Notes: generated from the sequence alone by a model not told the origin. A stretch of 64,000 nucleotides of DNA from Chlorokybus atmophyticus (GCA_009103225.1 RHPI01003156.1:1050159-1114158); one strand, 5' to 3'; counted from the first letter of the stretch, positions 1-64,000 are shown. Translations and numbers: made by a program.

Positions 1-3000
1 GGAATCAAAGGATGGGGATGCTTGTGAACCTCCTTGCAGTGGTTGCACATGTCAAAGTCTGGGCAGGTCTCGCAGCGCCATCCGCGGCCGATCTCAATCT
101 CACTTTGACAGATGTTGCAGGAGGCCACAAACGCCGGTGCTGTGGGATTGTGAAGGTGGTACAGAACCATCATAGAGGAATGTTTAGCGCGTCGCTGCAT
201 ATCAAATTGGTAGTGATTGCCCTGGCACAGGCTCAGGAACGCCTGGCGAGTGTCAAAGAACTCGCACATCATGATGCCGTCCCTATCAATTGTGTCCGGC
301 GGGATTGAAGGAGCCTCAACACCCATGAATGAGTGACAAACATCTGAGCCGCGAGGATGCCTGTCGCGAGGACTGTGGTCCTGTTATGAGCATGTGTCAG
401 TACCATGAACACTGCTCATGCTCATTGTACCAAGGCAAGATATTATCCTGGCTGAGAGGGACCTCTCTGCTAAGCATCAAAGAGCAAGCAAGGTTGTTGA
501 ATGGGCGACTTGATAAAACTGCACACCTGCTCTTCTACTTGGCACTTGGTGCAAAGATGAAAGTCCTTGCACTCCTGACACGACCATATGTTTCCACTCG
601 AGATATAGCGCCTGCAATGGGCGCAGAAGTGCTGCAGATGCACGAGGATGAAGTCTTCTTTCATGGGCTGTATGGCTTCACCCATCTGCAGACACGCCAA
701 GTCAACAACCAGAGTTTTTGCTGTCGCTTGCATAGAAACCAAGACTCACTACCAAACAGGGAGCTGACAGCACACACCTTGACCATCAGTAGCTGATCAG
801 GTGTTGCATCGTCTGGCACCTGAACTACATTCCCCTTGGGAGCGCTGCGTTTTGTGCTACTGGCCTTTTTGCTTTTGCCTTTCTTCTGCACTTTACGCTT
901 GGCCTCTTCTTTCTGTTCCTCGTCAACTTGCAAAACCATCTCCTCAGCGGCGCCAGGCCAGTAATCGCCATCAAAATAGGGAAGCTCTGTTGCTGACGCC
1001 GGCAACCCGTCCTTGCCTCCAACAAAGAAGGTGTCGAACAGATTGCTGCACTGCACCACAACACGCTGTTCTCGAGACTTGTGCAGCATCTTCAGGTACC
1101 ATTCCCGCAACTTGTCAGCTTTGGGTGTCTTCTGCTGTTCAGGATGGCAATAGAGAATGTAGTCCTCTCCTTTCAACGGGGGGCAAGCCCATATGTATAT
1201 GCTGAAAAAGCCGCGCATCTTCATGTAATGGACATAACCAACCTGCACACAATCAACATAACAATCATGCTCATGGGCACACAGGACACACCAAATGTTG
1301 CATTTGAAATGAACGCCAAGCGCCAGCAAGTGGTGCTTGACGCCACGTTAAAAGACGATGCGGCACTTACCAACACATCATGGTACACGAAGGTACGTAG
1401 CGCTTCGCCGCCGACGGTTCGCACTTCTGGCTGAAAGTACTTCACACTGTCCAGATAGGACAAGTATACCCGTCTTGTATTTGGCGCAGCGGCATCAGAG
1501 CCAAATTCCTGTGGAGCGTGTTACAAAGCTCAGCAACTGCTGCAGAAATAATCAACATGCTCATGGCAGTGCTGATTACAAACGGCCAACTACCTGAGTG
1601 TACATGCCGAAAAGGCAAACATCAACACCATCAATCTTTTGGAATAACAACACAACCTGCCAAGGTGTTAATTTTAGCAACAACAACACAGCAGGCAATG
1701 CGCTCAAGAAGCAAAGTCAGTAACAGGACGTACCTTGGACCGATAAGGGAACTCCCTGGGGAAGCCTTGTGCCCCATACCGTTCAAGGAATCGTGACTTC
1801 ACCTCCATCCGTTTGTCGGTGCACGACACAACACGCAGAGTCAACCCTTCAGCTGTTGAGACCTGCGAATGCCCAACAGGATGAAAACCAACAGCAAGCA
1901 TGCCAACTACATATGGACTTCATGGTGCTTGCACATGAACAGCACGCGTAGCAAACATCGTCAAGCATGCCAGCCCAAGCCAACAGAGTTCTGTGATATG
2001 GTAATCAGTCTTTACCTCACTCTCAGGCTTTCCTAATGCCTGAGCTCGCTGTAACCTTTCCTGCCGCAATGACTCACGAAGGTGGTGCTCCAAAAATTCA
2101 CTGAGGTGTGTGCGTGGTAATTCATGGGGTCCCTTAGGAAGTCCCGTGCGAACGGGGGTGCGTTGCTTTAACTCAATAAGTTCCGAGCAACAGTCTGGAC
2201 ACAGATGCTGACCGCCTCCGCTTTCATTGCGCCTACTATTGAACAACGCACATATCTGATGCTGCCAGGTCTCGCATCGGTCGCACTGCACCCACTGCAA
2301 GCAGGCAACGGGAACGGTTAGGGCATCGTGTCTATATATCAATATGTAACGAAGGTGCTCACAGACATGGTCCAGAAACTCCTTCAACATGGTGAATGCT
2401 GGCACATGTTTCATGCAACAGCACATACGGATTCCTCCATTGGCTCATCATTTTTGCGCTTCTCCATGCTTGATCTGGGCACCAACTGACAACCAGGCAA
2501 ACAAGCATCAAACTCTGCATTCAATAAATACTGCAGAAATAAAGTGCAAAGGTGCTGGTGAACTTGATGTACCTGACCATCCAGTTCAATGGAATCACTC
2601 TTGATGTCACAAAAGCATTGATTGCAAAAGATATGCTTGTTCTCGCCACCGTTGGTGATGGTAATGTAGTACACTGCATTGCGCTTCACCCGGATGCCAC
2701 AACTCGTGCAGTACAGCGGAGGCGGCTCAAAATACAGCTTTTCTTGTAAGCAGGCGCGGCATTGATTTTCCGTCAGATCCTTTACCTTGACCTGGCAACA
2801 GCAGAATGGTATGCATCAGTGGCAATCAGCTGGAAGGAGTGCTGCCAAGCAAACACCACTTGACTACACTCACATTTCGATTGCCTCGTAAAGACCTCAG
2901 GTGTACGCGTATTTGGTCAGCTGTCCAAGTCTGAACCAATGATGTCCATGAGCTCGCCTTTGGTTGTGGCTCAACCTTGGCAGCCTGCAATGGCATGTTG

Positions 3001-5472
3001 CCATTGACCATTGCTGTATTTGGCTCTTCAAGCTTGACCCGCTTAGCCGGAGGTTGCAAAGAATTCGTGTTCATGCTGGAAGTTGCCGCAACCATGGATT
3101 GCAACGCTGCGCCGTTGCTGGTAGTGGCACCAGTTGCAGGACTGGCGGCCCGATTGGATATGGCAAACGCATCAGTACCAGCAGGCAAAGCGGAAGCGGG
3201 CATGCTAGGTGCCGCCCCTGGCAAAGTGCTTCCAGGTACAGCTGCCACACCTGCAGCAGCAGCCTGTGCCTGCGCCTGCCTCTGCCGGATAGCCTCCTTG
3301 ACAGGCCCGCACACAGGACAACGCGCATCGCGACAGCGCTGGTGATGACCAAGAAGCTCACGGGAAGGTAGACATCTTGGATAAGCACACTGCGGGTCTT
3401 TGCAGCTAAGAACATGAAGCCACAACTTTCGCCCCATTACGCAGTGTGGAGTGACCTGGCAAGTTCCCTCTGGGAGTTGGCACTTGCTGGCATGCCGAAG
3501 AAAGAGCAACCACTGTTGTTGTTTGCGGATAAGCAGCTTCTTCTGCTCCAGCATCTGCTCTTGTGTGGCTGATCCATCAGGCAAGGTGCTTGGTGCCTGT
3601 GCAGATGCAGCCGGCGCTGACCCCGGCAGCTGTTGCTGTAGTAACAGCTGCCGCTGCTGCTGTTGAAGTTGTTGTTGTTGCTGTTGTATCACCTGTTGCG
3701 CTTGCAGTGCAGCTTGAGCAGCTGGCTGCTTGCCGACTGACGCTGGTCGCTGGGCTGAGCTTGTGCGTTGTAGCTGCTGAGCTGCATTCTGCTGTGCTTG
3801 CTGCAACAAATGCGGTTGCATGGGGCGCTGTTGCAGCTGCTGTGGACGCTGCTGTTGTTGCTGCTGCTGAAGTCGCTGTTGCTGCTGAAGAAGCTGCTGC
3901 CTTTTGAGCAGTTGCTGCTGTTGCTGTGGAGATAGTATTTGCGTCCCTGCATGTTGCGCAGTGCCGGGTTGCGCCACTGCCGGCAGGCCCCCAGATGCCA
4001 GCGCAGGTGTGCTGGCACCCCAATCCTGCTGTCCTGATGTGCCAAGGGACTGTGCTGTAGAGGACAACAGAGCTGACTGTGGGCCCATCGAAGCATGGCT
4101 GTCCTGCCCAATGCCTGGTGTTGGAATAAACATTGATACTCCTGTACTAGCGCCGTTGGTCATGCCCATGTTTTGTGCGGTACCTGTGGCCAACATGTTA
4201 CCCAGAGATACAACGCTCAACGATTGTGCTGGGCTCAATCCACTATCATTAGCAGTGTGAACATGTGTGAACAAATGTGCAAGGAGAAGCAGCATGCAAA
4301 ATGGCACCTTGACCGCCTCGCTGCAGTTGTTGTGACACTGGCCGGCCAGCAGTGCTGGCAAGTGTGCCATTGGGTATTGTTGCCCCATTCATCATGACAC
4401 CATTATTGACAAACAGCACATTATTCCCAGCCGCCCCAGGTGCACCATTTGTCATGCCTGCGTACAATTGATCCCTTTGCAGTTGTCAACACAATCTATG
4501 CAACAAGCTGTGATGTATGGCTTTCTTGCAATATGGTCACGAAGCAGTGCCATTGAAGATATGCACAAAGTGACGTTGATTACCATTCAACTTGGGTTGG
4601 ACCGCAGCACCAAGGTTGCCAAGCTGCCTGTAATCTGGTGTCCCGCTAGGACGCACCGCGCGTTGAGCATTTGCAGCAGTGACTGCAAGTGCTTGGCCGT
4701 TTATGGGGGCTACGGCACCAGTGCCGCTAGGCTGGGTTGCGGCTGCGGTCTGCGTGTTCATGTCAGATGGCACCTGACCGGGTTGGCCAGTTTGTGGTCG
4801 GTTAGCCATCCGTCGAGCAATCAGTTGCAAGCGTTGCTCTAAGGTGGTTGGATCTGCATACTCCTCCTGAGAACATACAAGATGCACATCAGCTACATGA
4901 CATTGTCGACTATGCCACACCAAACCAAGTTTGCCGTGCTCTAAGCCAAATATGCCAAGTTTTTCCAAGTTTGCCGTGCTCTAGTCAGGGCGTGCATTGA
5001 CAAGTTTGCCAGGATATTGGTGACAGAATAAGCTGCAGGTACTGTTGCAACCCATACTGACCACACTTGGCTATCGAAGCAATCAGAGTGACTTTTCTCA
5101 GAGTGCACTGCTGGACGCGGCGCATACATACCTTTGAACGGGCTGATCGGTACAGTTCCTCTTCCATGCGACGCACAAGATCTGGCAGTTTCTGCTGCCA
5201 ATCCTTGGACCCGTTGCGCTTGCGCTGCTTGAAAAAATCCAGACTGCAAGTATTCGTTCACTGATCACTACTGAGCTACGAACTTGTCCATATGAACAAC
5301 AAACATGAGTCCTGCTTGGCGATAGCATAACATGGTCTCTTCTATGTAAGTGCTGACATGACAGAATTGCACCCAACATGCAGCTCGCGTTAGGGCAAGC
5401 GCAGAACATTACATCTGTTTGAAGATGGCCACCCTTTGTGGTTTGTCTCCATCCGTCTGCCATGTGCGCCAT
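1..5472 (-). CDS. HAC1: CBP/p300-type histone acetyltransferase, plant HAC1-like; multi-exon, 3' end beyond the left edge, start codon uncertain
   Basis: Spliced minus-strand exons give a KIX-like segment ([23 protein letters not shown]|[13 protein letters not shown]), a poly-Q region, TAZ ([15 protein letters not shown]...CPVCGPVK), PHD ([19 protein letters not shown]), HAT core ([13 protein letters not shown]; [14 protein letters not shown]; [10 protein letters not shown]) and two ZZ fingers. [21 protein letters not shown]...[17 protein letters not shown] at about 100-250 is near-identical to plant HAC1. Confidence 0.95.
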
Positions 5473-12314: not shown

Positions 12315-13485
12315 TGTAACGGGAAGGTACATTAAATTACCACAAATCGACCATAAAAGCACCAAGTCTTTTGTGGTCGAGTGGGCTGTGACATTGGTCA
12401 TCGGAGCTTGAGACCCGGGTTCGATTCCTGCCTTGCACACGAATTCCGCGGTCGTTGTTTCTCGATCCAATAATCGTAAATGGTCACTTTATGAGTGCCA
12501 TCATCGATGGGTCGCGACCTGCCTAATGGCAGTCGCGCCGAAGTGACCTGACCAGTTCAGTCGGCGCGGCAGGGCGCGACCTGCCTATCGCGGCGACGCG
12601 ACCTGTGGGGCCGGCAGCGGAGCGCTATGCGCGCGTTGACCGGTATGGGCCTATATTGGCCGGTCCTTGGCTGTGGGGCCGGTGACCGACCCTAACAAAC
12701 CCCTTGGGTAATTCCCCAGCTGACCGCGCAGCTGCCGAGGACGTCAGCGTTCTTAAGTGGAGGGGAATGTAACGGGAAGGTACATTAAATTACCACAAAT
12801 CGACCATAAAAGCACCAAGTCTTTTGTGGTCGAGTGGGCTGTGACATTGGTCATCGGAGCTTGAGACCCGGGTTCGATACCTGCCTCGCACACGAATTCC
12901 GCGGTCGTTGTTTCTCGATCCAATAATCGTAAATGGTCACTTTATGAGTGCCATCATCGATGNCACTCGACCACAAAAGACTTGGTGTATATATGGTCGA
13001 TTTGTGGTAATTTAATGTACCTTCCCGTTACATTCCCCCCCACTTAAGAACGCTGACGTCCTCGGCAGCTGCGCGGTCAGCTGGGGAATTACCCAAGGGG
13101 TTTGTTAGGGTCGGTCACCGGCCCCACAGCCAAGGACCGGCCAATATAGGCCCATACCGGTCAACGCGCGCATAGCGCTCCGCTGCCGGCCCCACAGGTC
13201 GCGTCGCCGCGATAGGCAGGTCGCGCCCTGCCGCGCCGACTGAACTGGTCAGGTCACTTCGGCGCGACTGCCATTAGGCAGGTCGCGACCCATCGATGAT
13301 GGCACTCATAAAGTGACCATTTACGATTATTGGATCGAGAAACAACGACCGCGGAATTCGTGTGCAAGGCAGGAATCGAACCCGGGTCTCAAGCTCCGAT
13401 GACCAATGTCACAGCCCACTCGACCACAAAAGACTTGGTGCTTTTATGGTCGATTTGTGGTAATTTGATGTACCTTCCCGTTACA
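12315..13485. mobile_element. Palindromic TG...CA element with 5-bp TSD (CAAGG); each arm is built from tandem 453-bp units carrying tRNA-like A/B boxes
   Basis: CAAGG(12310-12314)|TGTAACGGG...CCCGTTACA|CAAGG(13486-13490). Unit starts at 12315 and 12768 on the plus strand, and at 13485 and 13032 on the minus strand. N join at 12963. A box TGGTCGAGTGG at 12374-12384, B box GGTTCGATTCC at 12418-12428, purine tract GGAGGGGAA directly before the second TGTAAC. Confidence 0.85.
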
Positions 13486-29930: not shown

Positions 29931-30256
29931 NNNNNNNNNNNNNNNNNNNNNNNNNNNNNNNNNNNNNNNNNNNNNNNNNNNNNNNNNNNNNNNNNNNNNN
30001 NNNNNNNNNNNNNNNNNNNNNNNNNNNNNNNNNNNNNNNNNNNNNNNNNNNNNNNNNNNNNNNNNNNNNNNNNNNNNNNNNNNNNNNNNNNNNNNNNNNN
30101 NNNNNNNNNNNNNNNNNNNNNNNNNNNNNNNNNNNNNNNNNNNNNNNNNNNNNNNNNNNNNNNNNNNNNNNNNNNNNNNNNNNNNNNNNNNNNNNNNNNN
30201 NNNNNNNNNNNNNNNNNNNNNNNNNNNNNNNNNNNNNNNNNNNNNNNNNNNNNNNN
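29931..30256. other. Assembly gap (326 N) flanked by G runs
   Basis: N run with GGGGG before and GGGGGGGGG after. Confidence 0.99.
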
Positions 30257-33200
30257 GGGGGGGGGCAACTTAGTGCTCTATGACGAGCGGAGCAAGTGTG
30301 CTTGCCAGCACCGCGCAACAACGGAAGTTGATGGACATCAATACCAACATCTCAACAAGGTTCTTGGGCTTTTGTGTGGCAAGGTTTAGCAACAATAAAG
30401 TTTGCACATGCATGTATTGTGTAGGCGTGCTGCATCGATTGCAACTTGCAAATGATGTTGCACGACATCAACTCTGTATGATGATAAAACTGATAAACCT
30501 TTTCAAATCAAATGCATGGATTTTGTAAGTGCAACATAGATATCGTTGCCATGGATAAGTATTGAAGCTCATGCGTAAATCCACTACCATATGCATATAC
30601 ATAAATACTATGATAGACACGTTTTAAATCATGAATCATTGCTTGATGTTATTCTCGATTAAGTAGATCATCATCTCGGATGACACTGTCGCATAATATA
30701 AACTTCGCGAGTATCAGTGACATTGCATAACGAGCGTACGCCCGCACAAAGTTTGTGCTACAAACCGCACCTCCACACTTTGCTTGCCTTTTACTGCACT
30801 AAATAGCATGCACACATGCCATCTGGAAAGCAATGGGTCCTTTAGTAATCAGCAGCAGCACGCACATATACAAGCCATCAAAGTACAAGCACAAACAAAT
30901 TACACACAACAATCAAAGCAAAGGGGGCTCGTTCCAGGTGCAAGAATTGGGCGAGGCAAGCAGAGCAGGCAAGAATTGTAATGACGCTAGTTCTTAAGTG
31001 TTTATGCATTGTAGATTAGTGAACTCATGGGCTGATTGACGGTGGTAATCATTTAGTCAATTAATATAAAAAGTTATATGCACGTGAAAACGCTAAGTGT
31101 TAAGTAAAAAAAGGGCACACGTGAGTGGCTTTTATAACGCCACACGCGAGCGAACTCACCAATGACGGCGGAAGTCATTTAAAATATAAATAACTCAGAT
31201 GGTGGGGACAGCCCTGCCACCACTACCCCATGATACGGCATAGATGTTTAAGCATATATTGGCGTAAGCGGCCAACAAATTGAGTTCAACTAGTTAGCCA
31301 AAAAGAGAAATTGGTTATACCCTCGTACTGAATATGGGATAAGCATTTGGATGGATGACACTTGGTAACTACTCGTAGCAGGTACTGCTGCCGGGATCAA
31401 GAGTGGGGCTCGACTCGGACGTGTATTGCTATGAGAGTTATAAAAGGTCATGCACCGCGAATAGTAGGAACCCAAGATGGAACTACCGCGACGTTACATA
31501 TGTTTCAAGCATTGCAAAGGGCAGTAACTTGCCCGTGATGTTGCAAGAAGCAGCAACTTGCATTTGCAAACCCACGATCACAGAAATAAATCCTTTGTTG
31601 AATTGTCACTACGTTTTTACCGGTTCGTGAGGTTGCACGGATATAACGAATGCCGCTTAAGAAGGTACTAGGTTTGGGTGAGCAAGGACAGGCTTGTTAA
31701 GGACAGAGTTTGAGAAGTGGAGCCCTTCCATGGACGCAGCTAATCCTTTCGCTAACTAGTTCTAAAATGATACTTGGCGTGAGTAGATGGTTCTCGGCGT
31801 GTGTGGATGCTGCAGCATCTGCACTTGGGAGCAACCTTTCACGTGCCAATGCTGTCCTTAAAAAACAGGTAGGTGCTCCGATCGCAAGGATACGACGAAT
31901 TAGGCTAAGGCTTAAGTTGGGACTTGATGGTAGTGATAAGAATAAACGAAATCTCTACTTAGGTTCCGAGGTTTTAGGGGGTCTGAATCCTCCTGCTGTG
32001 ATGGGAAACCGCGGTAAGAGGTTAGCGTACGACGAGTCAATTAGGTCAGAACCGAATTGACCCTAGCACCCAGTCTACTTGGAGGAGGATACTCATAAAA
32101 CTCTAGGCGGGAGGGATTAAGCGAAATCGCTATCATCTTAAGTTTCCCCGTCAAGCAAATTGTTGTGAAAAGGCATTGGCTAGCTTTTTAGCGGCGCACG
32201 CTAGCACTAATGTAGCTCGCTTCCCACGCCCGCAAAAGGAATTAGCCATTTTAAAAACATATGTGGATTCGTGGAGACGCAAATGCACGCCCCAAAAAGT
32301 CGGATTTTAAATAATCGAGATTGGGAGATAATCAAAACTTCAGTAGGGTTCTTTATCTCCCTTGCCGCCGACATTCTCGGGTGGTGAAGCGCTTTCCCGC
32401 ACTTGGAAGTTTAAAGGGCGTAAGCCCTTCTCAAAAATTCGAGTGATAGTTGACTACGTGAATTCAGTGAACTAACAAGCTGAATTGGTTAGTGAAGCAT
32501 TGACCGCATTTGCAAGTCGCAAATTTTGAGAAATTGGAGAATTTGGAGAAATTCGGGGAAGGGGTGTACCTATAGAGGGAGCGCATATGATCAGAGCCAG
32601 AGGTTAGGCTCATGCGTAAGGAAAATAGAGGGGCCCACAGTCAACATACACACCGCACACAAGCCATCACATTAACCAGCAACACCACAACAACTGCATG
32701 CATGCAAGTATATTGCAAATTGTAATGTAGCTGAGGAGCTGCGCTTCCCAACCATATACGGGCATTTGTTGTATTTGTCAAGGTTGTCTACCATGTTCAG
32801 TCATATTGCTGATCTTGGCTGCTTGCATACAATCACATACCAACCCAAGGCCATCATTCTACCGCATGTGCTTGGTACATGAAGCAATGTTTGTGGACTA
32901 TCTGGAGGAGGTGTTGTCGTGGCTGGCATGACTGGCATAGCATGGCTATACGGTATACGGTATAAGCATAAGTAAGCCGCACGTGAGTGGGCCACCCTGG
33001 AGCGACGTACGGGAGACTTTTGCGACTCGGTACAGCGGAAATAGCTGAAAAATAAAAGGTCCGTTCCAACCCTAATTTGTAGCTAACCCTAAACAGTGCT
33101 TTGGGGGCCGGCGTGGTGGCGGTGGGCTTTGCTGGTGTCATGCACGATGGCGGTGGCGTGGGGCTGCGATGGATACCGCTGATAATAGGCATTGTCCAAT

Positions 33201-53599: not shown

Positions 53600-56500
53600 C
53601 TCGCTGCGCTTCTCCGGACGTGCTGGCACTACCCCAATTGATGAGTTCATCATCAAGTTTCATGCCAAGAGGCGTCAGCAAGCCCTCAAGAGCAAGACTG
53701 GTTAAATTTTTTTGTCATTCTATATCATGGCTCAGTATCCTGATTTTGAGGCACATAATGTGTGGAAATCCATTGCTGAGCTGCACCATGTCGATGGCTA
53801 TGGCAAGCTCGCCAGCACCATAACATCCACATCGTTGCACAGCCCTGCAGCTGTTGCCCCTGCCACAATGGTCCCTCCAGCTTTAATCACCGGCCTTGCT
53901 TTAGCTGCAGCTATGCAGAAAGCGGAGAACGAAAAGGGCAAGTTGGTTGTTGCCTCGTCAACCCCTGCAGAGATCGAGGTTAAGACGGCGGACCGCCATA
54001 TCAGGGTACTCAACTGGACCGCTGCCATCATCAAGGACTGAGCAAGATGAGCAGCAAGCTGCAGCATCGAAGATGGGTGCATCTCCATTGCCAACGCTAA
54101 GGTCACGTGCTCCAGCTGAAAACAGTGTCTTCACCCTCAGGTCATAGGCACTGCGCGCACCAGCCATCATTGTCGGTGGTGTGATGTCTGACTCTCTACT
54201 CAAGGACCTTTACACTGCAATGCGGCGTACCCTCCCACCTCAAACCAACCGCCAGGTGGAGGAGCTGAGATGCTTCCGAAAGAAGCCCAACGAGGACCCT
54301 CTCCGGCTGTACTCGCGACTGAAAGGGCTGCTGAAAACAACTGACTACAAGATCATTAGCGACAAGGCAGCCACAGTGGCTTTATGTGGCCAAGCTGGAT
54401 CCCACCTTGAGTGAGTCAACGCGAATGACGCTAAACTGCAGCCGGCCTCTTGGCTACACCCTCAAGCGCTCAAGATTGCACAAGCCATCCACAAGCGCGC
54501 GGTGTATAAGAAAGAGGTTCTGGACATCAACCTGAGTGCCTCACGGCCCGTGGCAAGCACAAGTGCAGAGCCCTCCAAGAAACCATAGCTGAGACGTTCC
54601 GTTCATGCGCAACAATTAGCTCACGCTACCCTTGTTGCTCCGATGCTGTGCCAATGGTGTGGTCGGCATGGGCTATAAAAAAGAGTGCACTAAATGTTAT
54701 GGTAAGCTTGTGTGCAACTACTGCCATAAGATAGGACACTTAAAGGCAGTAAGCTGGCTCAAGTTCCCCGAGGTGCGGCCCTCTATTGACTACAACATTG
54801 GCAACAATGCTGGTGGCTACCACGGCAACAACAGCAACAATAATGGGAGCCACAACAACAGCGACAACGATGGTGGCTACAATTACAGCAACAACGCTGG
54901 TGGCTACCACTGCAACAACAGCAACAATAACGGGGGCCACAACAATAGCAACAACGCTGGTGGTCACAACAACGGCAACAACGTTGGTGGCCACAACCCC
55001 ATCAACTACCACAACAACACCATTGATCGCAAGGAAGAGCCTGGTTACGGAGGAAAGAACCGCCCTCCACATTGCAAAGGACCCGAGGGACGTCCGCGTG
55101 CTGAAGCTGTTGCTGTTAAAGCACCAATCAATCTACCACCTGTTGAGCAAGTTGCAGCCCTCATGGCGCGTGTTGCACAGTGGAAGGAGCAAAGAACATG
55201 ACTATCAAGCCTGCGACGCTGTGGTGGGCGTTGATGGCATCAAAGCGGGAGAGGAGCACTCTCATACCATCGCGAGTGCAACCGTCAAGACGTGCGCGTA
55301 GACAAGCTTGCGCATCATCAACAGCATTGTACGAAGCAACAAGTGGGGCTGCATCAGTAGCCACAATCATTGCTCGGATTGTCGAAAATCGGCACACTAC
55401 TGACTATGCATGGAGTTGGTGCAAGCACAAGCAGACACTCTCTATCAGAGCATTCACACACAAGGCTGATCAAAAAGGCTCTCTAAGGATTACAATCAAG
55501 CCCTACCGCGGGCTTTTATACCCGCCAGTTCTGCACCTGTTTACTCTAGAAGCCACCACAACTTCTACATTCAATCAACTCCTGCGCACTAAGTTGCGCC
55601 ACGTAGCTACTTATAAGCCCAAGAGCTGTTCAACAAGCTATACCATGCACCATATAGTACGTAACCACTGAGCTACAAGACTTCTACCACCACGCTCAAA
55701 CCCTTCCTATGTCGAGAAGCACGTCCACGCCTGGATTTTATCCATTGAAGTCCGCGCCTGAACCCTTCTCGGCTGGACCCTTCTCGCGCTTGAATCTTCT
55801 CGCGGTTAACTTTACCCACAGGGCAAGCTGACCAGTTACAAAAATATCCACAATAGGGACGATGTCGTTAATGACACCATTACAACCACACCAACCGGCG
55901 CAGCAAGTGCAGATACACCTGGCACCACTCTGGCTCCGTTGATGGAAAGCACCGACACAGCTGCAGCCGAGGTTGTTGAATCTGTTGGTGATGAAGGCAC
56001 CACACTAGCCACTGCTACAGCCATGGCACCAGTCACGACTACCGCTGTACTCACATCAACTACTTCTGTCACAACGACTGCTGCAGGTGCCACAACCATT
56101 GCTGCTGCTGATGCTGCCGCACCCTCTGCAGTCGGCACACTATCTGCGGAAGTCACCGCCACCGTAGCATCAGAGGATCGTGCAGCCCCTCCATCATACC
56201 TTGCTGTCACTCAGCAAGTGCCGCACGGATCGCAAATAGAGCGCACCTTGGTGTCCGTCTTCTGCAACATTGAACCCATCACCATTGTATGCGGCCCAGG
56301 AGGGCAACGCACAACACGAGTGGCACAAGATGATCCATATTGCCACTACCACCTCCAGAGTACCACACACTTCCGGAGCCCACACAGCAACGGTTGAAGG
56401 ATGAGATTCTTGCAGTCACTGCGCCCGAGATGCGAAACCGTCTCTTTTGGGTCACCTATCGACAACCTGCTGTGTTGGAGTTGGCAATCCTGTTGTGCTT

Positions 56501-56950
56501 GACATTCCATAAAAGGCTGCAAGAGGCACCCACTAAATCGCGACCGCCAATGCCTGCTTAGCAGGTTGATTTCGAGCCCTCACGGTTGGAGCCGCTCGAA
56601 CTCCGGCGTCGCTCGGTGCAACACCTTGTGGTGGCCACACAAACATGCTGACATGCTGGCCCTGCACTCCGTGGGCTTGTCCAAGGGACCCGATAAGAAC
56701 GATCCTCGGCCCTCTACTAGCTAGTAGCACGCATACCGCTATTGACTAAATCAAGCGGCACAAGTAGATGCGCGACGGCAGGCGTAGAAGAAAGCATCAC
56801 GCGTTGCTGCTAGCCAACCTGCAAGGGCATTCGACGACCCCGGTGCCTCCACCACACTCCCGTTGGTGCCATCTTGCGCAGCCGCGGTTGCTCCACAGGG
56901 GCACGCAGCTGCTGCTGACCAAGCGAGGGCGTTGGCGCAACAATTTAGCG
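53600..56950 (+). mobile_element. Degenerate Ty3/Gypsy-like gag region with two zinc knuckles, an Asn/Gly-rich repeat and a Thr/Ala-rich tail; no intact pol or LTRs found
   Basis: VEELRCFRKKPNEDPLRLYSRLKGLL (retrotransposon gag motif). Frameshifted CQWCGRHG.YKKEC and CNYCHKIGHLKAV knuckles at about 54640-54750. Many stops and frameshifts. Confidence 0.65.
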
Positions 56951-57491
56951 GGGTTTTCGCCACGCTGCTTCCTTCCTGAGTTAATGATATGCCTGAAGCT
57001 GTCACCTACCATCTGTGCCCGCCGATTTGCCCGTGAAAAAGAGGGCTGGATGTGTGGCAATTGCAGGCCACGCTGCCTATTTCAGCCAATTTATGTATGT
57101 TATTGGCGACACTAGGTTTGGGTTTAATAAACCTGGCTGAATTTATAAATAGTTTGGCTTTACAGACGGGGACGTTATATTTGCCCTGAGTGGGCCTTAA
57201 ATCAAATGATAAGGCCTTTAGATGCTAGTCGCGTTTTATGTTATGGCCGGCTCTTTACATAATGGCAATGTTAATTAAAACGTCTTTTAATGCAGGGCCA
57301 AAGCGCTTACAAGAAAAATTCTTTGCCAAAGTAAAAATAACAAACCACTTTGGCCGCTGCGGCAAGCCTTTTACACTCTACTCTTTATACTATCTTTATG
57401 GCTAGGCTCTTTTTGCCAGCAAAAGTGCGCTGAAAAACGTAAAATCTGTTAACATACAGTATGTGAGTGAAGTTCAAGTAAGCCCTATTTT

Positions 57492-58383
57492 ATGACATAA
57501 ACGAACATATTATGACCAAGGTCATGCAGCTTAAAGAAGAAGGGGCAGCTGCCAGCAATAATGAGGGGTGCTTGTTTATTATTTGTGGGCAAAACATTGA
57601 TAGACGCTACTTTCAACATAAATCAGAATTTATCATTGGCCGCTCTGAGTTGGCTGCTTGGGGTCAATTAAAAAAGTGCTTCCAGACAACATGCCAAACT
57701 GGTGACCAACAACATTCGCACCTGGCTTAGTGATACGGGCTCGACCAATGGCACGTTTGTCAACAACCAGCACATTACTTGCATGAATTTACAGGATGGT
57801 AATCTTGTCCGGGTGGGGCAAACGATTTTTAAGTATTTGTCAGGCTCTAATGTTGAAAACGTATACCACGAGGAAATGTATCATCTCTCAACAATTGATG
57901 GCTTAAGCAACACTTATAATAAGCGATGTTTTTAAACGCTTTAGGTTGTGAATTAAATCAAACGCACCAATATGACAGAAGTTTATCGCTGGTGCTATTT
58001 AACATTGATTACTTTTCAAAATAAATAATATTTATGGGCATTTCGCAGGCGATCATGTGTTACGAGAATTGGCGACGTTGATTAGTCATAACATTTGGGC
58101 CTAAAATTTGTTAGCTCGTTATGGAGGGGAAGAAGTTGCCATTATGCTGCCTGAAGTAGATATCGTTTGGGCTGTTTTAATGTGTGAAAAGCTGCGTAGT
58201 TTAACAGAAGAAAACGTCATTGTCTTTAGTCATGAAGAGATTTTGTCGACAATTAGCCCAGAGATCTATTCATATAATGCCAAAATAGGTTATATTAGCT
58301 TAGGTTCTTTTATTGCCGAGGCTGATGCTAAATCATATGCTGCCAAAACCAACCAAAACAGCCGCAACCGTTTGTTTGCCTGA
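57492..58383 (+). pseudogene. Bacterial FHA-GGDEF diguanylate cyclase pseudogene
   Basis: FHA: FIIGRS...SRQHAKL...LSDTGSTNGTFVNN...LQDGNLVRVGQTIFKYL. GGDEF: IDGLSNTYNKR...LSLVLFNIDYF..INNIYGHFAGDHVLRELA...LARYGGEEVAIMLPE...AEAD...YAAK...RNR. Frameshifts near 57680 and 57930 and an in-frame TAA at 58102-58104. No introns. Confidence 0.9.
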
Positions 58384-58440
58384 GTTTTAAGCGCCAGCCA
58401 CATTTTATATAAGCCTTGGTGGATTGCATGACGGACCTTT

Positions 58441-60298
58441 ATGCTTGAGCTCCAAGACAAAATTGCAACTTTAAACCTCATGTCATTGACTTAATTACCG
58501 CTGGTGAAGTGGACGAGCGGCCCAGCTCTGTTATCAACAAATTGATTGAAAATGCTTTAGATGCTGGGGCGCACCACATCGAGGTGACTTTAGGGGGCGG
58601 CGGGCTTGAACAAATCATTAATAGTGATGATGGCAATGGCATGTCTCCTAAAGATGCCAGTCAATCCATTTGAAGGCATGCCACAAGTAAACTACGGCAA
58701 GCCGCAGATCTGGCAGAGGCTACGACTATGGAGCTTCGGGGTGAAGCTTTGTCATCCATTGCGGCGGTCAGCCATTTAACTTTGATCACGCGGCCACCTG
58801 CCAGCGCTGCTGGTTGGCATCTTGTTTTGGCGGGTGGACAATTACAAGCTAACGCCTCAATAGGCTGCCCGGTTGGTACCACGCTTGAAGTCAGCCATTT
58901 GCTTTACAACACTCCCGCCCGCCGCAAAATTACGCGCGCCTGCCACAGAGCACGCCCACTGCTTAGAGATGTGCAGCCGATTATTGCTTAGCCATAAAAA
59001 CGTGAGTTTAGTGCTGCAGGCCGCCAACGGCGCTTGCTGGCTTTTCGTGCAAATGACAATAAAGAGATACGTGTAGCTGCTTGATTGCGGACACCGGTGA
59101 ATTCATTCATACCTTTGCAATGGCAAGAAGGTGATGTAGAAATCAAGGGTTTTTTTAGCTTTGCCGCGTTCAGAGCACGCCGATAGCCGCGAAATGTGAT
59201 TATTTGTCAACGGCCGCTCTGTGCGTGACCGCTTTGTGCAGCGGGCTGTTGTCAGAGCCTGGCGGCCCTTTTGGTCAGCAGCGCTACCCCACAGTGGTGC
59301 TCTTTTTAAAGTTGACAGCGGCTCCATGATGTAAATGTGCATCCGTAAAAGCTTGAAGTCCGTTTTGCGCGTCCTCAAGCTATATTCACCGCCATTGGCC
59401 AAGCTTTTTTTAATGGCTTTGAGCAAGCTAGCAGCAGTCAATTATGCCTCACCTTCAAGGTGAGGTGGGCAAAGTTTGCCCACCTCAAGACTGCAAGCTG
59501 CAACAGATTGGTTTTTGGCTCAAGCTACCACAAGTAGTTTAGATTTAAGAGTAACTCCAAGCAGTGATTTAAAGCCACCATCACCAGTGGCTTCTCCGGA
59601 CAATTTTAGCTTGCCAGCGGCAGCGCCAATATTAACGATCGTGGGCTTTGCGGCTGCCGCTGTGCAGATGGTGCGTATTGTTGAACAACGTTTTTATTTT
59701 AGCGAAGGTGGCCACGACTTTTGGTTGCTAGATTGGTCCGCTTGGGCTCACTAAGAAGCTCTAAAGAACTTTTTCTCGAAGCCCAAACCGCTTTAGTGAG
59801 GCTTGAAACCTTACTCTTGCCAGCATCTCTGACACCTGCTGCAGCTTGGCTGGATTCGTTGGCGCCAGCTTGGCCAAAGTTGGCTATATATGGCTTTAAA
59901 ATAAAATAAAATAAAATAAAAACCGGTAGGTCTTAGCCATTATTTGGTGCGGGCTATTCCTCAAGCTCTATCAGCCATGTCAGCCACTGAAGTTGCCCAA
60001 CATATTTTGACTGTCGCCTAAGCGACGCCTTTAAAGCAGAGCCTTGGTCATTTGCACCAAGAGATCTACCAACCAATGTACGAGCGCTGTGTGGCACGTT
60101 TACAAGGGCCCTGGCAAGAAATTGCCGCCAAAGCTTGAGCACAGCGATGGCTTGCCAAAAAAGAGTTTATGATCTGGCAAGCAAGCTCTTTTTGTCAACG
60201 CTTGAGCACCGCTACAGTGCAAACATGGTGGACTATTGAGTCAAATCTAAGCGTCTTAAAGCTCTTTGAACATCTCGCAATTTGGTTGATAGGTTAGA
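58441..60298 (+). pseudogene. mutL: Bacterial DNA mismatch repair protein MutL pseudogene
   Basis: LITAGEVDERPSSVINKLIENALDAGA...DDGNGM...*RHATSKL...LRGEALSSIAAVSHLTLITR; GTTLEVSHLLYNTPARRK; FVNGRSVRD. In-frame TGA at 58671-58673, several frameshifts, and an (AAAAT)n run at about 59898-59922. The 3' end is approximate. Confidence 0.9.
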
Positions 60299-60728
60299 CT
60301 AGCATAAAAGCGGGCCGCTTTGGGGGCAGCATGCAACAAACAGTGCTTTAAACCTTGATTTTTCAACCAATGTTCACATAAAAGCAACGCGTGCCCACGC
60401 GATGGCTGCGAAAAGGTTCTTGCACATACATTTGGTCGACATACCCATAGCGATTTTTAGGGCGTAGCCAAAAAATTGGATTGGCACTTAATATGTCGGC
60501 CCAACCAAAACCAATGGCTTTAGCGTCTTGCTCGGCTAAAAACAAATTCAATTTGAGGCGCGTGCAGCGCCACAAAAATATCATGGTCAAGTTTTGGCAT
60601 GATCTTTTCGTTAGTGTTTCGTTAATGTTTTCAGGGTCAAACTCTTTGATAAGCTCTGTAAAAAGAGCCACATTCTACTGCTTACTTGCTTTTGTCGCCG
60701 GATAATATGTCATGTTTGTAAGATTCAT
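60256..60728 (-). pseudogene. Bacterial GNAT N-acetyltransferase pseudogene
   Basis: LFLAEQDAKAIGFG...YGYVDQMYVQEPFRSHRVGT (GNAT motif A), continuing after a frameshift as LKNQGLKHCLLHAAPKAARFYASLTYQ. Internal TAG near the start. Confidence 0.75.
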
Positions 60729-60914
60729 AATGAAAAGGCTTTCAAATTATCGGCAACTATGCTACAATTGGCTTGTTTTTATGAGGTCTGTTAAAACTTT
60801 TGTGGTCTCCAGTAAGTTTAACATTGACGAGTTGGGTTTAAATCTTTTAAGGTGAAATCTCTAAAGCAAGCGCGGGCATTTTTGTCAACCGCCAAGCTTT
60901 TTATGAATGAGGTA

Positions 60915-60991
60915 GGGCCGTTAACTCAGCTGGTAGAGCATCGGCTCTTTTATTCCGCTGGTCGGGCGTTTAATTTGCCCACGGCCCACCA
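60915..60991 (+). tRNA. trnK: Bacterial-type tRNA-Lys(UUU) pseudogene with encoded CCA
   Basis: Perfect acceptor stem GGGCCGT/ACGGCCC plus ACCA; D arm ACTC-AGCTGGTA-GAGC with a position-10 mismatch; anticodon loop CTTTTAT with a broken stem and one extra nt; T arm GGGCG-TTTAATT-TGCCC lacking the invariant C56. Confidence 0.8.
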
Positions 60992-60999
60992 TGTTAGCC

Positions 61000-63590
61000 T
61001 TAGCTCATACGGCAACTTCTACTTGTAAAAGTTTTTTAAGCTGAACCTATTTAAAGCGTTAATGCTTTCTCATTCATGTTTGCCAAATATTCAAGCAAGA
61101 AATATTCAAGCTTAGCTAATTTCGGCCAAGTTTTTATCCTTGTCTAAGCGCATAAGTGAGCTAATTGCTTAAAGGCCTCTTTCATGTATATCTTTGGCAG
61201 CCTTGATGCTTAAAAGGTGGATGTGAGCAAGTAAATTTGCGCAGCGAAGGCTTCAGGTAGTTTTAAAGAAGCTAAATGTAAAGGTTTTTGCACATTAGTG
61301 GAAGTAAAGATGTAACTTTCTTGCTCACAAAAAAGCCGTCAAATCTACATTAGAGCGTATTGACTACTCTATATCAAGGCTATCGGTAACAGTTACAGGC
61401 AAGTGGGTGCCATCGGCGAGATAAAATGTCAGTAAAGGCAATAAGGTTTGGTGATAAGTCAGCTTTAAATGTATAATGGGATCAGATGTGTGGCTTTGCT
61501 CAAGATTGTTTTTGCAGGTGGTTAAAATCTCTACCTGCGCTGATGATAACGAAATATTGGTCGCCTGTTTATAGGCCAATAGCGCGGGCTCTTGCTCAGG
61601 GTTGTAAGCGCGCTTGGCAGCAACAGCGGCAGCCAACTCCGGCAAATTTTGTCGGCCTCCAGCAATTGCAAACAGCGCTGCGCTTGCTAAATGCGGGTTT
61701 CAAGGCTCAAAATAGTTTGCAACTGCTTTTGCAGCGCAAAAAGAGATTTATTTGTGAGGGCGGGGTTGTCCTTTGGCACGTCTTCAAAACGCTGCCTAAC
61801 AAGGTGTTGCCGTAAAGGAAAGCTCCAAACAGCTACGGCCCTAATGCTAAACAGTCAGCTGTTGCACATCTGAGGTGTGGCAGCTGTGGCCAAGGAGTTA
61901 GCAGCCGTAAACAATATTCGTCGAGCAACAAAAGTATCGGCTGCAATAATGGGGTTGTAGGGCCGCTTTTAATATCACGGCAGAATATGTACGGCTTGCT
62001 AGCTAAGGTTTTAAAATACGACGGACCCCACGTTTAAAAGCGACAGCTCTGGCAAATGAAAAAAAGGCGGTAAGACTCTTTTTCAAACGAGAAACGGTGC
62101 CAGCTCTGGAAATAAGGGCGGTGCCATTTGCCAGAATTCCGGCGCTGGTGACTTGAGGGCGGTTAGTTTTGACGGCGGCAAAATAATGAGCAGCCCATCT
62201 ACAAGATATTTTTGTAGATTATCTTTTTGGAATTAACTAAATTCGCTAGCGTTTATCCACATTATTTTCAGTTTTTAAGTATAACTTGAACAGTTTAAAT
62301 ACATTGATGTTGGCCATAAGTGATGCTCGTTGTGCATAACTGCAGCGCTGGCTTAGCATGGCCAATAAATGCAGATTAACTCGAGGGTGTGAGGCTCTTG
62401 CCAAATCCCTTGCTAACTTTGTAAACAATAATTGATCAAGAGGTTTTCACTCTCGGCCACGAGAGTTAACAAAGTTAAGCTGTGACGAATAATTTTCAGC
62501 GCTTGGGCATGCTGCCGAGAGGCTAAATGAAAAAGTAATAATTGTAAGCTATCGTTAATAGTTTGAGCCTGCAAAATGTCGTTGGCGCTCATGCTGGCAA
62601 TAAACAATTCAGCTTAACCATGCGCGATTAATGTCGGCGTCAAAAACTACTTATTGGCTGGTTCTTTTGTTTTCCTGAGGCGAAGATAACTGACTATGCG
62701 GTATCAATGCTTGCCGCTGTTGACTGTCGTGCTTTCGTAGCATTAAATAAGGCCCCCCCAAAAAAAGGCTGGCGTGGCAGTTAACAGCAGCCAACGCGGA
62801 TCTTGCTGCCAAGCCCAACTGCCATCGGCTTGAGGCACAAAGCTCAAGTGGTAGCGTTGATTCTACAGACGTTATCCCCGCAGCGGTTTATCGCATGTAT
62901 AAAGTACCGGTCTTATCAACAAACCTTAATACCATTTGCAAGAGCGCCGGAAAAATGTTGAGGTGTGGCTAAACTTGAAGATTTTTTATCGCCTCAAAAG
63001 GGAGGCTCGGTGGCATCTTGATGGGGGCGCGCAATATAGTGAATTGTTTTTTGAGTTGCTGCTTGTATGGCTTCTTGCAACTTAGCTTTGAAAAGAATTT
63101 CTTGGTGTAGGTTTAACGCTGCAATAGCGGAGAGTTGTTTCCGTTGTAGTCCTTTGGCTATGGCACGTTATGGTTGCCAAGACCATTGTTAAAAATAATA
63201 ATGGTTGATGTTAACATAGAGGGCATTAGCGGAATATTATAGGCATATTCTTTCATGATTTTATGGCGCAGTTGTTGCAATAAAATTTTGCTCAGCTTAT
63301 GAATAAAAAAATTAGTGAAGCATTTCCATCCTCAAGAGCCAGAACGTTGACCAGTGTGCCAAGCTGCTGGAGTATCAATACAAGGTTGCGCTTGACCACA
63401 ATACCTTGGCAATAGTTTACTGTATAATGTTGTGGCGCCATTTGTTGCGGTCGGCAAAATAGCAAGAGAAATAAGTTAAAACAAAAATGAGTTTGGTTGC
63501 AAATCATGAAGAGTTTTTGCATCAATATTACCCCGAGCTATGACCCAAGCATTTTTGTTTTTGGTGGTTCTGAAGTGCGCATTGTGGGAA
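61000..63590 (-). pseudogene. Further decayed, intronless, bacterial-like coding sequence of unknown product(s)
   Basis: Same AT-rich composition as the mutL block. Protein-like minus-strand stretches broken by stops, e.g. LRQHLVRQRFEDVPKDNPALTNKSLFALQKQLQTILSLETRI* and the ORFs at 61364-61645, 62246-62428 and 62413-62607. Confidence 0.5.
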
Positions 63591-64000
63591 ACCATTGTAA
63601 TTGAGGGGGAGGTTACCTCATCCCTCAAGGGTACACCATACAACGAGGTGGAGCCGGTATAATGGGAGATCAACAACTCCGTACTGCGCGCATACGACTA
63701 GAAGTCACGCTGCACAGGTTGGAGGGCAGTGCATAAAGAGAGATGATGGGGATGCGAGAGGGCAGCGCAGCTCGAGCATGGATAGTGACATGGCTCGTCG
63801 CCAATAACCCTGCCGTCCCCATGTTTGCCTATGGCATTACAGCATTATTGTTGGGGGCGTTCATCCGTTCGCTACGACAAGCATATGATGAAGTTTCCAC
63901 CACTGCTCCAGACACCTTAGAGGGAGTGCAGGAGGCAATGCTACGTCTTCTAGGAATAGAAACAGCACGATAGCGTTGGCGCATCGCCATCGCTAATGAA

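Follow-up and report, generated by a model that had tools for sequence, protein, structure and literature searches.

A 6.6-kb stretch in the genome assembly of the streptophyte alga Chlorokybus atmophyticus (GCA_009103225.1) is, as judged from its sequence and gene order, a piece of bacterial chromosome by descent. It lies toward the right end of the window, which is the 64,000-nucleotide part of scaffold RHPI01003156.1 analyzed here (scaffold positions 1050159 to 1114158; all positions below are counted from the first letter of the window). The insert contains the remains of a gene for a DgcB-type diguanylate cyclase with FHA and GGDEF domains, of the mismatch repair gene mutL, of a convergent GNAT acetyltransferase gene and of a tRNA-Lys. 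Every recognizable gene in the insert is broken, as is the tRNA, and the insert is non-functional. The evidence presented here makes it very probable that this is a genuine and old bacteria-to-nucleus insertion in Chlorokybus.

The features of the insert are listed below. LLR is the log-likelihood ratio of a second-order Markov model of the insert core against a model of the rest of the window.

56973..57050, no strand: left junction zone, where a host repeat copy stops and foreign composition starts
57051..57499, no strand: leader of foreign composition 5' of FHA-GGDEF, with the highest insert-like LLR in the scan (0.08-0.12)
57500..58383, plus strand: DgcB-type FHA-GGDEF diguanylate cyclase pseudogene, full length (Pfam and alignment)
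58449..60190, plus strand: MutL (DNA mismatch repair endonuclease) pseudogene, near full length (NCBIfam and alignment)
60259..60674, minus strand: GNAT acetyltransferase pseudogene, convergent with mutL (Pfam and alignment)
60915..60991, plus strand: decayed bacterial tRNA-Lys(UUU) with a genome-encoded CCA at 60989-60991 (Rfam RF00005)
60992..63590, no strand: DNA of foreign composition with no demonstrable gene relic, insert-like LLR to about 63600
63580..63620, no strand: right junction zone, where LLR falls from +0.05 (63400-63599) to -0.09 (63600-63799) and guanine-cytosine (GC) content rises, with no N

Gene order shared with bacterial contigs

Among metagenome sequences, the FHA stretch retrieved a contig of 6.1 kb with 63% GC (Ga0182027_10038592, here L018). 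It carries five features, with protein lengths given in amino acids (aa).

628-1518, plus strand: FHA-GGDEF
1524-3260, plus strand: mutL
3273-3743, minus strand: GNAT
3753-4967, minus strand: a 404-aa gene
5070-5145, plus strand: tRNA-Lys(ttt) with terminal CCA

The order and orientation of the four elements are identical in the window and in L018, except for the extra 404-aa gene of L018, and the synteny stops past the tRNA-Lys. Two other contigs hold related arrangements. L017 (ENA ERZ26273096, the locus of P0004; 67% GC) has a gene for a 295-aa FHA-GGDEF protein 5 kb upstream of mutL and a GNAT stub after mutL. An 89.6-kb metagenome contig (JGI 3300072015, the P0001 contig) carries pgi, a 294-aa FHA-GGDEF gene and mutL head to tail. 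Full-length protein identities to the bacterial genes are 48-57%. The conserved order of four elements argues that the insert derives from one contiguous piece of bacterial chromosome and is not a chance collection of domains.

The broken genes

Family searches were run on stop-free pieces of the insert, and lesions were mapped by a frameshift-aware protein-to-DNA aligner against intact bacterial homologues. Pieces of the first gene match the Pfam FHA (E=3.6e-11) and GGDEF (E=6e-6) families, and the relic has the architecture of DgcB, with an N-terminal FHA domain and a C-terminal GGDEF domain in about 290 aa. It is 57% identical to the 295-aa protein of L017 over residues 4-293 and 50% identical to that of L018. 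Three frameshifts, caused by deletions near 57656 (2 bases), 57928 and 58017, and two TAA stops, at 57671 and 58104, interrupt the reading frame. The active site reads GGEEV instead of GGEEF, and the relic has neither an intact GG(D/E)EF motif nor an open frame.

The mutL relic is recognized by NCBIfam TIGR00585 in three successive pieces, at 8e-20 (model positions 5-68), 7e-30 (72-160) and 0.02 (249-272), and one piece matches the Pfam MutL-type GHKL ATPase at 5.5e-6. The N-terminal GHKL ATPase/mismatch-repair domain is present as a pseudogene only. Aligned to P0004, the relic shows 48% identity over 516 residues, and its first ~950 well-aligned bases contain at least six frameshifts and at least four stops. 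The frameshifts lie near 58929, 59027, 59165, 59275 and 59318, with more downstream; the stops are TGA at 58673, TGA at 59084, TGA in place of Trp at 59199 and TAA in place of Gln at 59348. Of the DQHA endonuclease motif at the C-terminus nothing recognizable is left; the DQHAAHER of L018 aligns with a frame-shifted stretch of the window, and Pfam MutL_C matches none of the pieces searched. An alternative genetic code was considered for the in-frame TGA codons and was rejected in view of the additional TAA stops and the numerous frameshifts.

Two further observations concern the mutL relic. A perfect (TAAAA)5 microsatellite occupies 59897-59921, a place with normal coding sequence in the homologues, and was probably formed once the gene was already dead. 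At 60126-60165, contigs from X2 and X3, sequencing runs of the study's other organism, are 80% alike to the window over 40 bases and then diverge. This match is probably due to chance or to a conserved motif and not to a shared insert.

The GNAT relic narrowly exceeds the Pfam cut-off for Acetyltransf_1 (21.9 bits against 20.7). It is 50% identical to the 156-aa GNAT protein of L018 over residues 39-156, with frameshifts near 60546 and 60391, and 67% identical in tblastx to the gene stub that follows mutL in L017. The GNAT piece had no match in a collection of 5.8 billion proteins.

Rfam RF00005 recognizes the tRNA at 60915-60988 with 36.1 bits, against a gathering score of 29, and with four non-standard pairs. 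ARAGORN called no tRNA in the window, and the tRNA-Lys relic was picked up by Rfam only. Compared with the intact tRNA-Lys(ttt) of L018, the relic has a mismatch in the D-stem, an anticodon loop of 8 bases (one extra) and a T-loop of TTTAATT where L018 has TTCGACT. Three arms are thus damaged, and a foldable cloverleaf is no longer present. An initial annotation of this DNA, made from the sequence alone, had already named these four elements, including the convergent orientation of the GNAT gene and the CCA end of the tRNA, and had described the three protein genes as carrying stops or frameshifts and the tRNA as mutated. The Pfam, NCBIfam and Rfam matches bear out the first part, and the frameshift-aware alignments, the rejection by ARAGORN and the non-standard pairs and extra anticodon-loop base seen with Rfam bear out the second.

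The same annotation had also listed further open reading frame relics to the right of the tRNA, and these do not stand. The longest open segments at 61.0-63.6 kb (112 and 111 aa) are at the level expected by chance in a first-order Markov simulation (P=0.42), and pieces from this region had no match in Pfam, NCBIfam, PHROGs or the protein collection. Among these pieces, the one of 111 aa at 61367-61699 returned nothing from the 5.8 billion proteins, and its Atlas matches, with 154 shared features, are at chance level. On the other side of the gene block, the leader at 57.0-57.5 kb had no Pfam, NCBIfam or PHROGs match on its stop-free pieces and contains no pgi relic. Promoter and terminator scans gave little above shuffled controls.

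Extent of decay and age

Within 3.2 kb, the insert carries no fewer than 17 disabling lesions. Several of the frameshifts are deletions of 2 bases or occur away from homopolymers, and the lesions also include nonsense substitutions outside homopolymers. Three counts bear on age: 6 stops in ~610 well-aligned codons, ~9 insertions or deletions in 1.8 kb, and 5-6 destructive changes in the 76 bases of the tRNA. On the general behavior of pseudogenes, each of the three would correspond to roughly 5-10% neutral divergence since the loss of function, which suggests that the insertion is not recent. Where L017 and L018 are in agreement, C-to-T and G-to-A make up 36 of the 63 single-step changes; this count does not separate post-insertion decay from a low-GC donor and is not used as evidence.

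Composition and boundaries of the insert

The edges of the insert are sharp in composition. GC content falls from 0.55-0.58 at 56.0-57.0 kb to 0.37-0.41 at 57.0-58.5 kb, ranges between 0.38 and 0.52 up to about 63.6 kb and then rises, with 44% for the insert overall. The window outside the insert is mainly 50-57% GC and has eukaryotic features. The LLR changes sign at 56.9-57.05 kb on the left and at 63.5-63.6 kb on the right, and no other 1-kb stretch of the window has an insert-like LLR. The abrupt shift to AT-richer DNA described in the initial annotation is therefore seen both in the GC drop near 57.0 kb and in the LLR at both ends.

The signature of the insert is more than low GC, since its dinucleotides differ even from those of AT-rich host DNA. 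Relative to expectation, TG/CA are at 1.16-1.21 in the insert versus 1.4-1.5 in host DNA, and AA/TT are at 1.3 versus 1.0. The AT-rich stretches of the host in the window (10-12, 30-32, 46-48 and 52-52.8 kb) keep host-type dinucleotides, and bacterial-like frames are absent from them.

Runs of N occur in the window only at 12963, 22737, 29931-30256 and 45291, all far from either junction, in agreement with the gap-free joins reported from the sequence alone. The run at 29931-30256 (326 N) is the one sizeable gap of the window. It is followed by 1.7 kb of 38-44% GC (30257-32000) with host-type dinucleotides, and this low-GC stretch is unrelated to the bacterial insert.

At the left edge, positions 56921-56998 belong to a diverged high-copy repeat, which has a depth of ~60 in a public short-read run of 355 Mb (X1), or ~20-50x the depth of the insert, with 13 of 78 bases differing. 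The X1 contigs of this repeat match 56921-56998 and diverge from the window past 56973 or 56998. Other copies of the repeat continue differently past these points, which indicates that the host copy breaks off at the start of the foreign DNA. Host-like repeats had been claimed for both sides of the insert; they are shown on the left only, by this high-copy repeat, the window including just 400 bases of right flank.

Terminal inverted or direct repeats, a target duplication and transposon-type ends were all absent from the insert in a repeat search, and BLAST of the insert and both flanks found no second copy of either elsewhere in the window. Farther to the left, an open frame at 54632-55201 (plus strand) has a zinc knuckle like that of retroviral gag (C..C....H). 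The knuckle is followed by a tandem repeat of 27/87 bases, at 54801-54997, that codes for a low-complexity tail rich in Asn and Gly. This left flank of the insert resembles DNA derived from a retroelement.

Probable integration into the algal chromosome

Whether the insert is part of the algal chromosome was examined by comparing run X1 with positions 56650-62649 of the window. For a genome of ~89 Mb (1398 windows of 64 kb), 355 Mb corresponds to ~4x depth, or ~3x in 31-mers. The run contains 21% of the sampled 31-mers of the insert. Seven X1 contigs of 158-263 bases, ~1.3 kb in total, show zero differences to the insert; they include 57383-57546, 61515-61761, 62017-62192, 62334-62505 and 62485-62649. 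If the lesions were assembly errors at the observed density, ~7 differences would be expected in 1.3 kb, and none is seen, which argues that the assembly is accurate here. The word depth of the contigs over the insert is 2.2-4.5, in a run whose contigs cover no single-copy host flank; against the ~3 expected, this depth would fit single-copy nuclear DNA. Host-type DNA lies on both sides of the insert in one gap-free stretch. From this contiguity, the exact agreement of short-read contigs and the fitting depth, we infer chromosomal integration.

Several points weigh against this interpretation. No X1 contig crosses the left junction (the contigs are at most 263 bases long, and the comparison ended at 62649), and no mapped lesion falls within the listed contigs. 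X1, the sole run with sequence of the insert, is shallow and possibly the genome's own sample, so it is not independent evidence. Of the 1.6 kb of searched flanks it contains almost nothing, which is compatible with chance at 4x and is not reassuring. In addition, the right-hand 2.6 kb has no recognizable bacterial gene, and the donor GC of ~44% is far from the 63-67% of the nearest relatives.

The same observations bear on an assembly artefact, in which a fragment of a culture bacterium was chimerically joined into an algal scaffold. Algal cultures are seldom axenic, no junction-spanning read was seen, and words of the insert occur in X1, with next to none from the 1.6 kb of searched flanks. 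A chimera, however, requires a false join on either side of an internal piece of 6.6 kb without any N. Neither a dead tRNA-Lys nor a run of three dead genes would be tolerated by a living contaminant, and the short-read contigs agree exactly with the insert at nuclear depth. A chimeric origin is therefore improbable.

Pseudogenes in a row could also come from a living, heavily degenerating symbiont whose DNA was mis-joined to that of the host. Symbionts that have recently become host-restricted can have many pseudogenes, and the depth of the insert resembles that of the host. Such a symbiont would nonetheless have to live with a tRNA-Lys(UUU) broken in three arms and with all four adjacent elements dead, and gap-free host DNA flanks the insert on both sides; this explanation is hardly tenable. 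An old, dead transfer from bacteria to the nucleus, as proposed in the initial annotation, thus stands as far as bacterial origin (by synteny) and death (by the lesions) are concerned, and not as an integration demonstrated by junction-crossing reads.

Origin of the donor DNA

The relatives of the insert are distant. In a profile-free search against 1.84 billion representatives, the best mutL piece matched thousands of MutLs, the closest with 56-60% identity. A GTDB scan with the MutL piece of the window found no relative, and one with P0001 found only distant MutLs of 29-38% identity. Judged by these searches, the donor is without a close sequenced relative, which agrees with the earlier suggestion that it may be undescribed.

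The Atlas search with MutL returned 'Pseudomonadota' only, and the Atlas clusters nearest the FHA-GGDEF protein of L017 are mostly Myxococcota. The predicted structure of the L017 protein has a predicted local distance difference test score (pLDDT) of 88.9. Its AlphaFold-cluster matches are generic GGDEF proteins of 19-42% identity, and its closest solved structure is 6HBZ, that of Bdellovibrio DgcB (E=6.7e-49). This structure is of full-length DgcB (Bd0742), which is said to have orthologues in Bdellovibrio strains and in myxobacteria (PMC6733907). The FHA-GGDEF arrangement has been described as being of limited distribution, and the adjacency of pgi and dgcB as specific to Bdellovibrio (PMC8354745). 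The P0001 contig, in which the pgi/FHA-GGDEF block is extended by mutL, suggests a wider spread.

Like DgcB of Bdellovibrio bacteriovorus, the protein once encoded in the insert combines FHA and GGDEF domains in ~290 aa. Unlike dgcB, the Chlorokybus copy is a pseudogene with five lesions and GGEEV for GGEEF, and no pgi relic is detectable upstream of it. The relic, at 57% and 50% identity, is closer to L017 and L018 than L017 is to DgcB (roughly 40% by alignment). The DgcB architecture, the pgi-FHA-GGDEF-mutL arrangement of the P0001 contig and the Myxococcota clusters together point to a donor of the Bdellovibrionota/Myxococcota type. The donor most likely belonged to this 'delta' group, a placement that is provisional at the level of phylum.

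Composition separates the donor from the contigs that share its gene order. GC at the third position of aligned codons (GC3) is 0.45 in the insert. Since only ~5-10% of the sequence would have decayed, the donor itself should have been of moderate GC (~44-50%), and it was therefore probably no close relative of L017 or L018.

The initial annotation had seen in the insert a fossil of an endosymbiont, parasite or prey bacterium. A lifestyle is not readable from the DNA of the insert, and the affinity of the DgcB-type gene is with the Bdellovibrio/Myxococcus group. Members of this group are predators of bacteria and, to our knowledge, do not occur as algal endosymbionts. One speculative and rather unlikely scenario is that the DNA came from an undescribed lineage of moderate GC, akin to the Bdellovibrio-and-like or myxobacterial predators, that this donor was in close physical contact with the ancestors of Chlorokybus as an epibiont, invader or endosymbiont, and that the insert is one of several of its fragments scattered in the nucleus. 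If this were true, the host assembly could yield part of a bacterial genome not known from elsewhere, and with it evidence of an unknown interaction between alga and bacterium.

Probable route of entry and later decay

In the proposed course of events, at least 6.6 kb of contiguous bacterial chromosome would have been joined into repeat-rich, gene-poor nuclear DNA of Chlorokybus, probably by non-homologous end joining; transposon-type ends are absent. The piece would have run from just 5' of the dgcB-like gene through mutL, the convergent GNAT gene and tRNA-Lys and for ~2.6 kb beyond. It appears never to have been domesticated, as it has no introns, host signals or intact frame. Neutral drift would since have introduced the frameshifts (mostly small deletions), the premature stops and the base changes that broke the tRNA cloverleaf.

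Delivery by a vector would give the insert a different history. A giant virus, a virophage or a cargo-carrying transposon could have brought the DNA in, in which case the insert would be part of a larger mobile-element relic, and its location in repeat-rich DNA fits such an origin. The insert, however, has no terminal repeats and no target duplication, Pfam and NCBIfam searches found no viral or transposon gene in it, and IMG/VR gave only generic FHA matches of 39-47% over ~50 residues. The gene order, moreover, is that of a bacterial chromosome. Delivery by a vector is very unlikely on these grounds.

Comparison with known bacterial insertions

Dead multi-gene bacterial insertions in nuclear genomes are already known. 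In the classic case, large pieces of the Wolbachia chromosome are inserted in the germline genomes of insects and nematodes, mostly as decaying, untranscribed pseudogenes. Wolbachia lives in the germline of its hosts as an endosymbiont, from where the way into the nucleus is obvious, whereas no such association is known for the donor of the Chlorokybus insert. Among green algae, the nuclear genome of Volvox carteri strain EVE contains a rickettsial insert of ~9 kbp with four genes (Kawafune et al. 2015, PMC4324946). As in Volvox, a green algal nuclear genome holds a contiguous, multi-gene bacterial stretch in the gene order of the donor. The two cases differ in that Chlorokybus is a streptophyte and not a volvocine chlorophyte, and in that each recognizable gene of its insert has been shown to be broken. 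They also differ in the donor, which was rickettsial in Volvox and is of the DgcB-bearing Bdellovibrio/Myxococcus type in Chlorokybus, with no living relative or endosymbiont known. This donor group is not known to have been linked to algae before.

The domesticated bacterial genes of streptophyte algae are likewise nuclear and of bacterial origin, but they bear introns and are apparently functional. The Chlorokybus block, in contrast, comprises several genes without introns, keeps a bacterial gene order and is dead, and it may be seen as a failed outcome of the same process of horizontal transfer, which has been much discussed for this lineage. A literature search found no report of a dead bacterial chromosome insert in Chlorokybus or in other streptophyte algae.

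Significance for horizontal gene transfer in streptophytes

The case that genes of bacterial origin aided adaptation in streptophyte algae and early land plants leans almost wholly on genes that are domesticated and bear introns, and that are taken to be foreign on the basis of trees. A decaying syntenic block would be direct physical evidence that raw bacterial DNA enters a heritable nuclear genome. The host is a free-living, non-phagotrophic streptophyte alga and a close relative of land plants, and the state of the insert suggests that most of the DNA that enters simply dies. The insert may serve as a dated marker, through its presence or absence among Chlorokybus species, and as a yardstick of neutral evolution for the genome. 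It also offers a glimpse of a bacterial lineage without a close sequenced relative.

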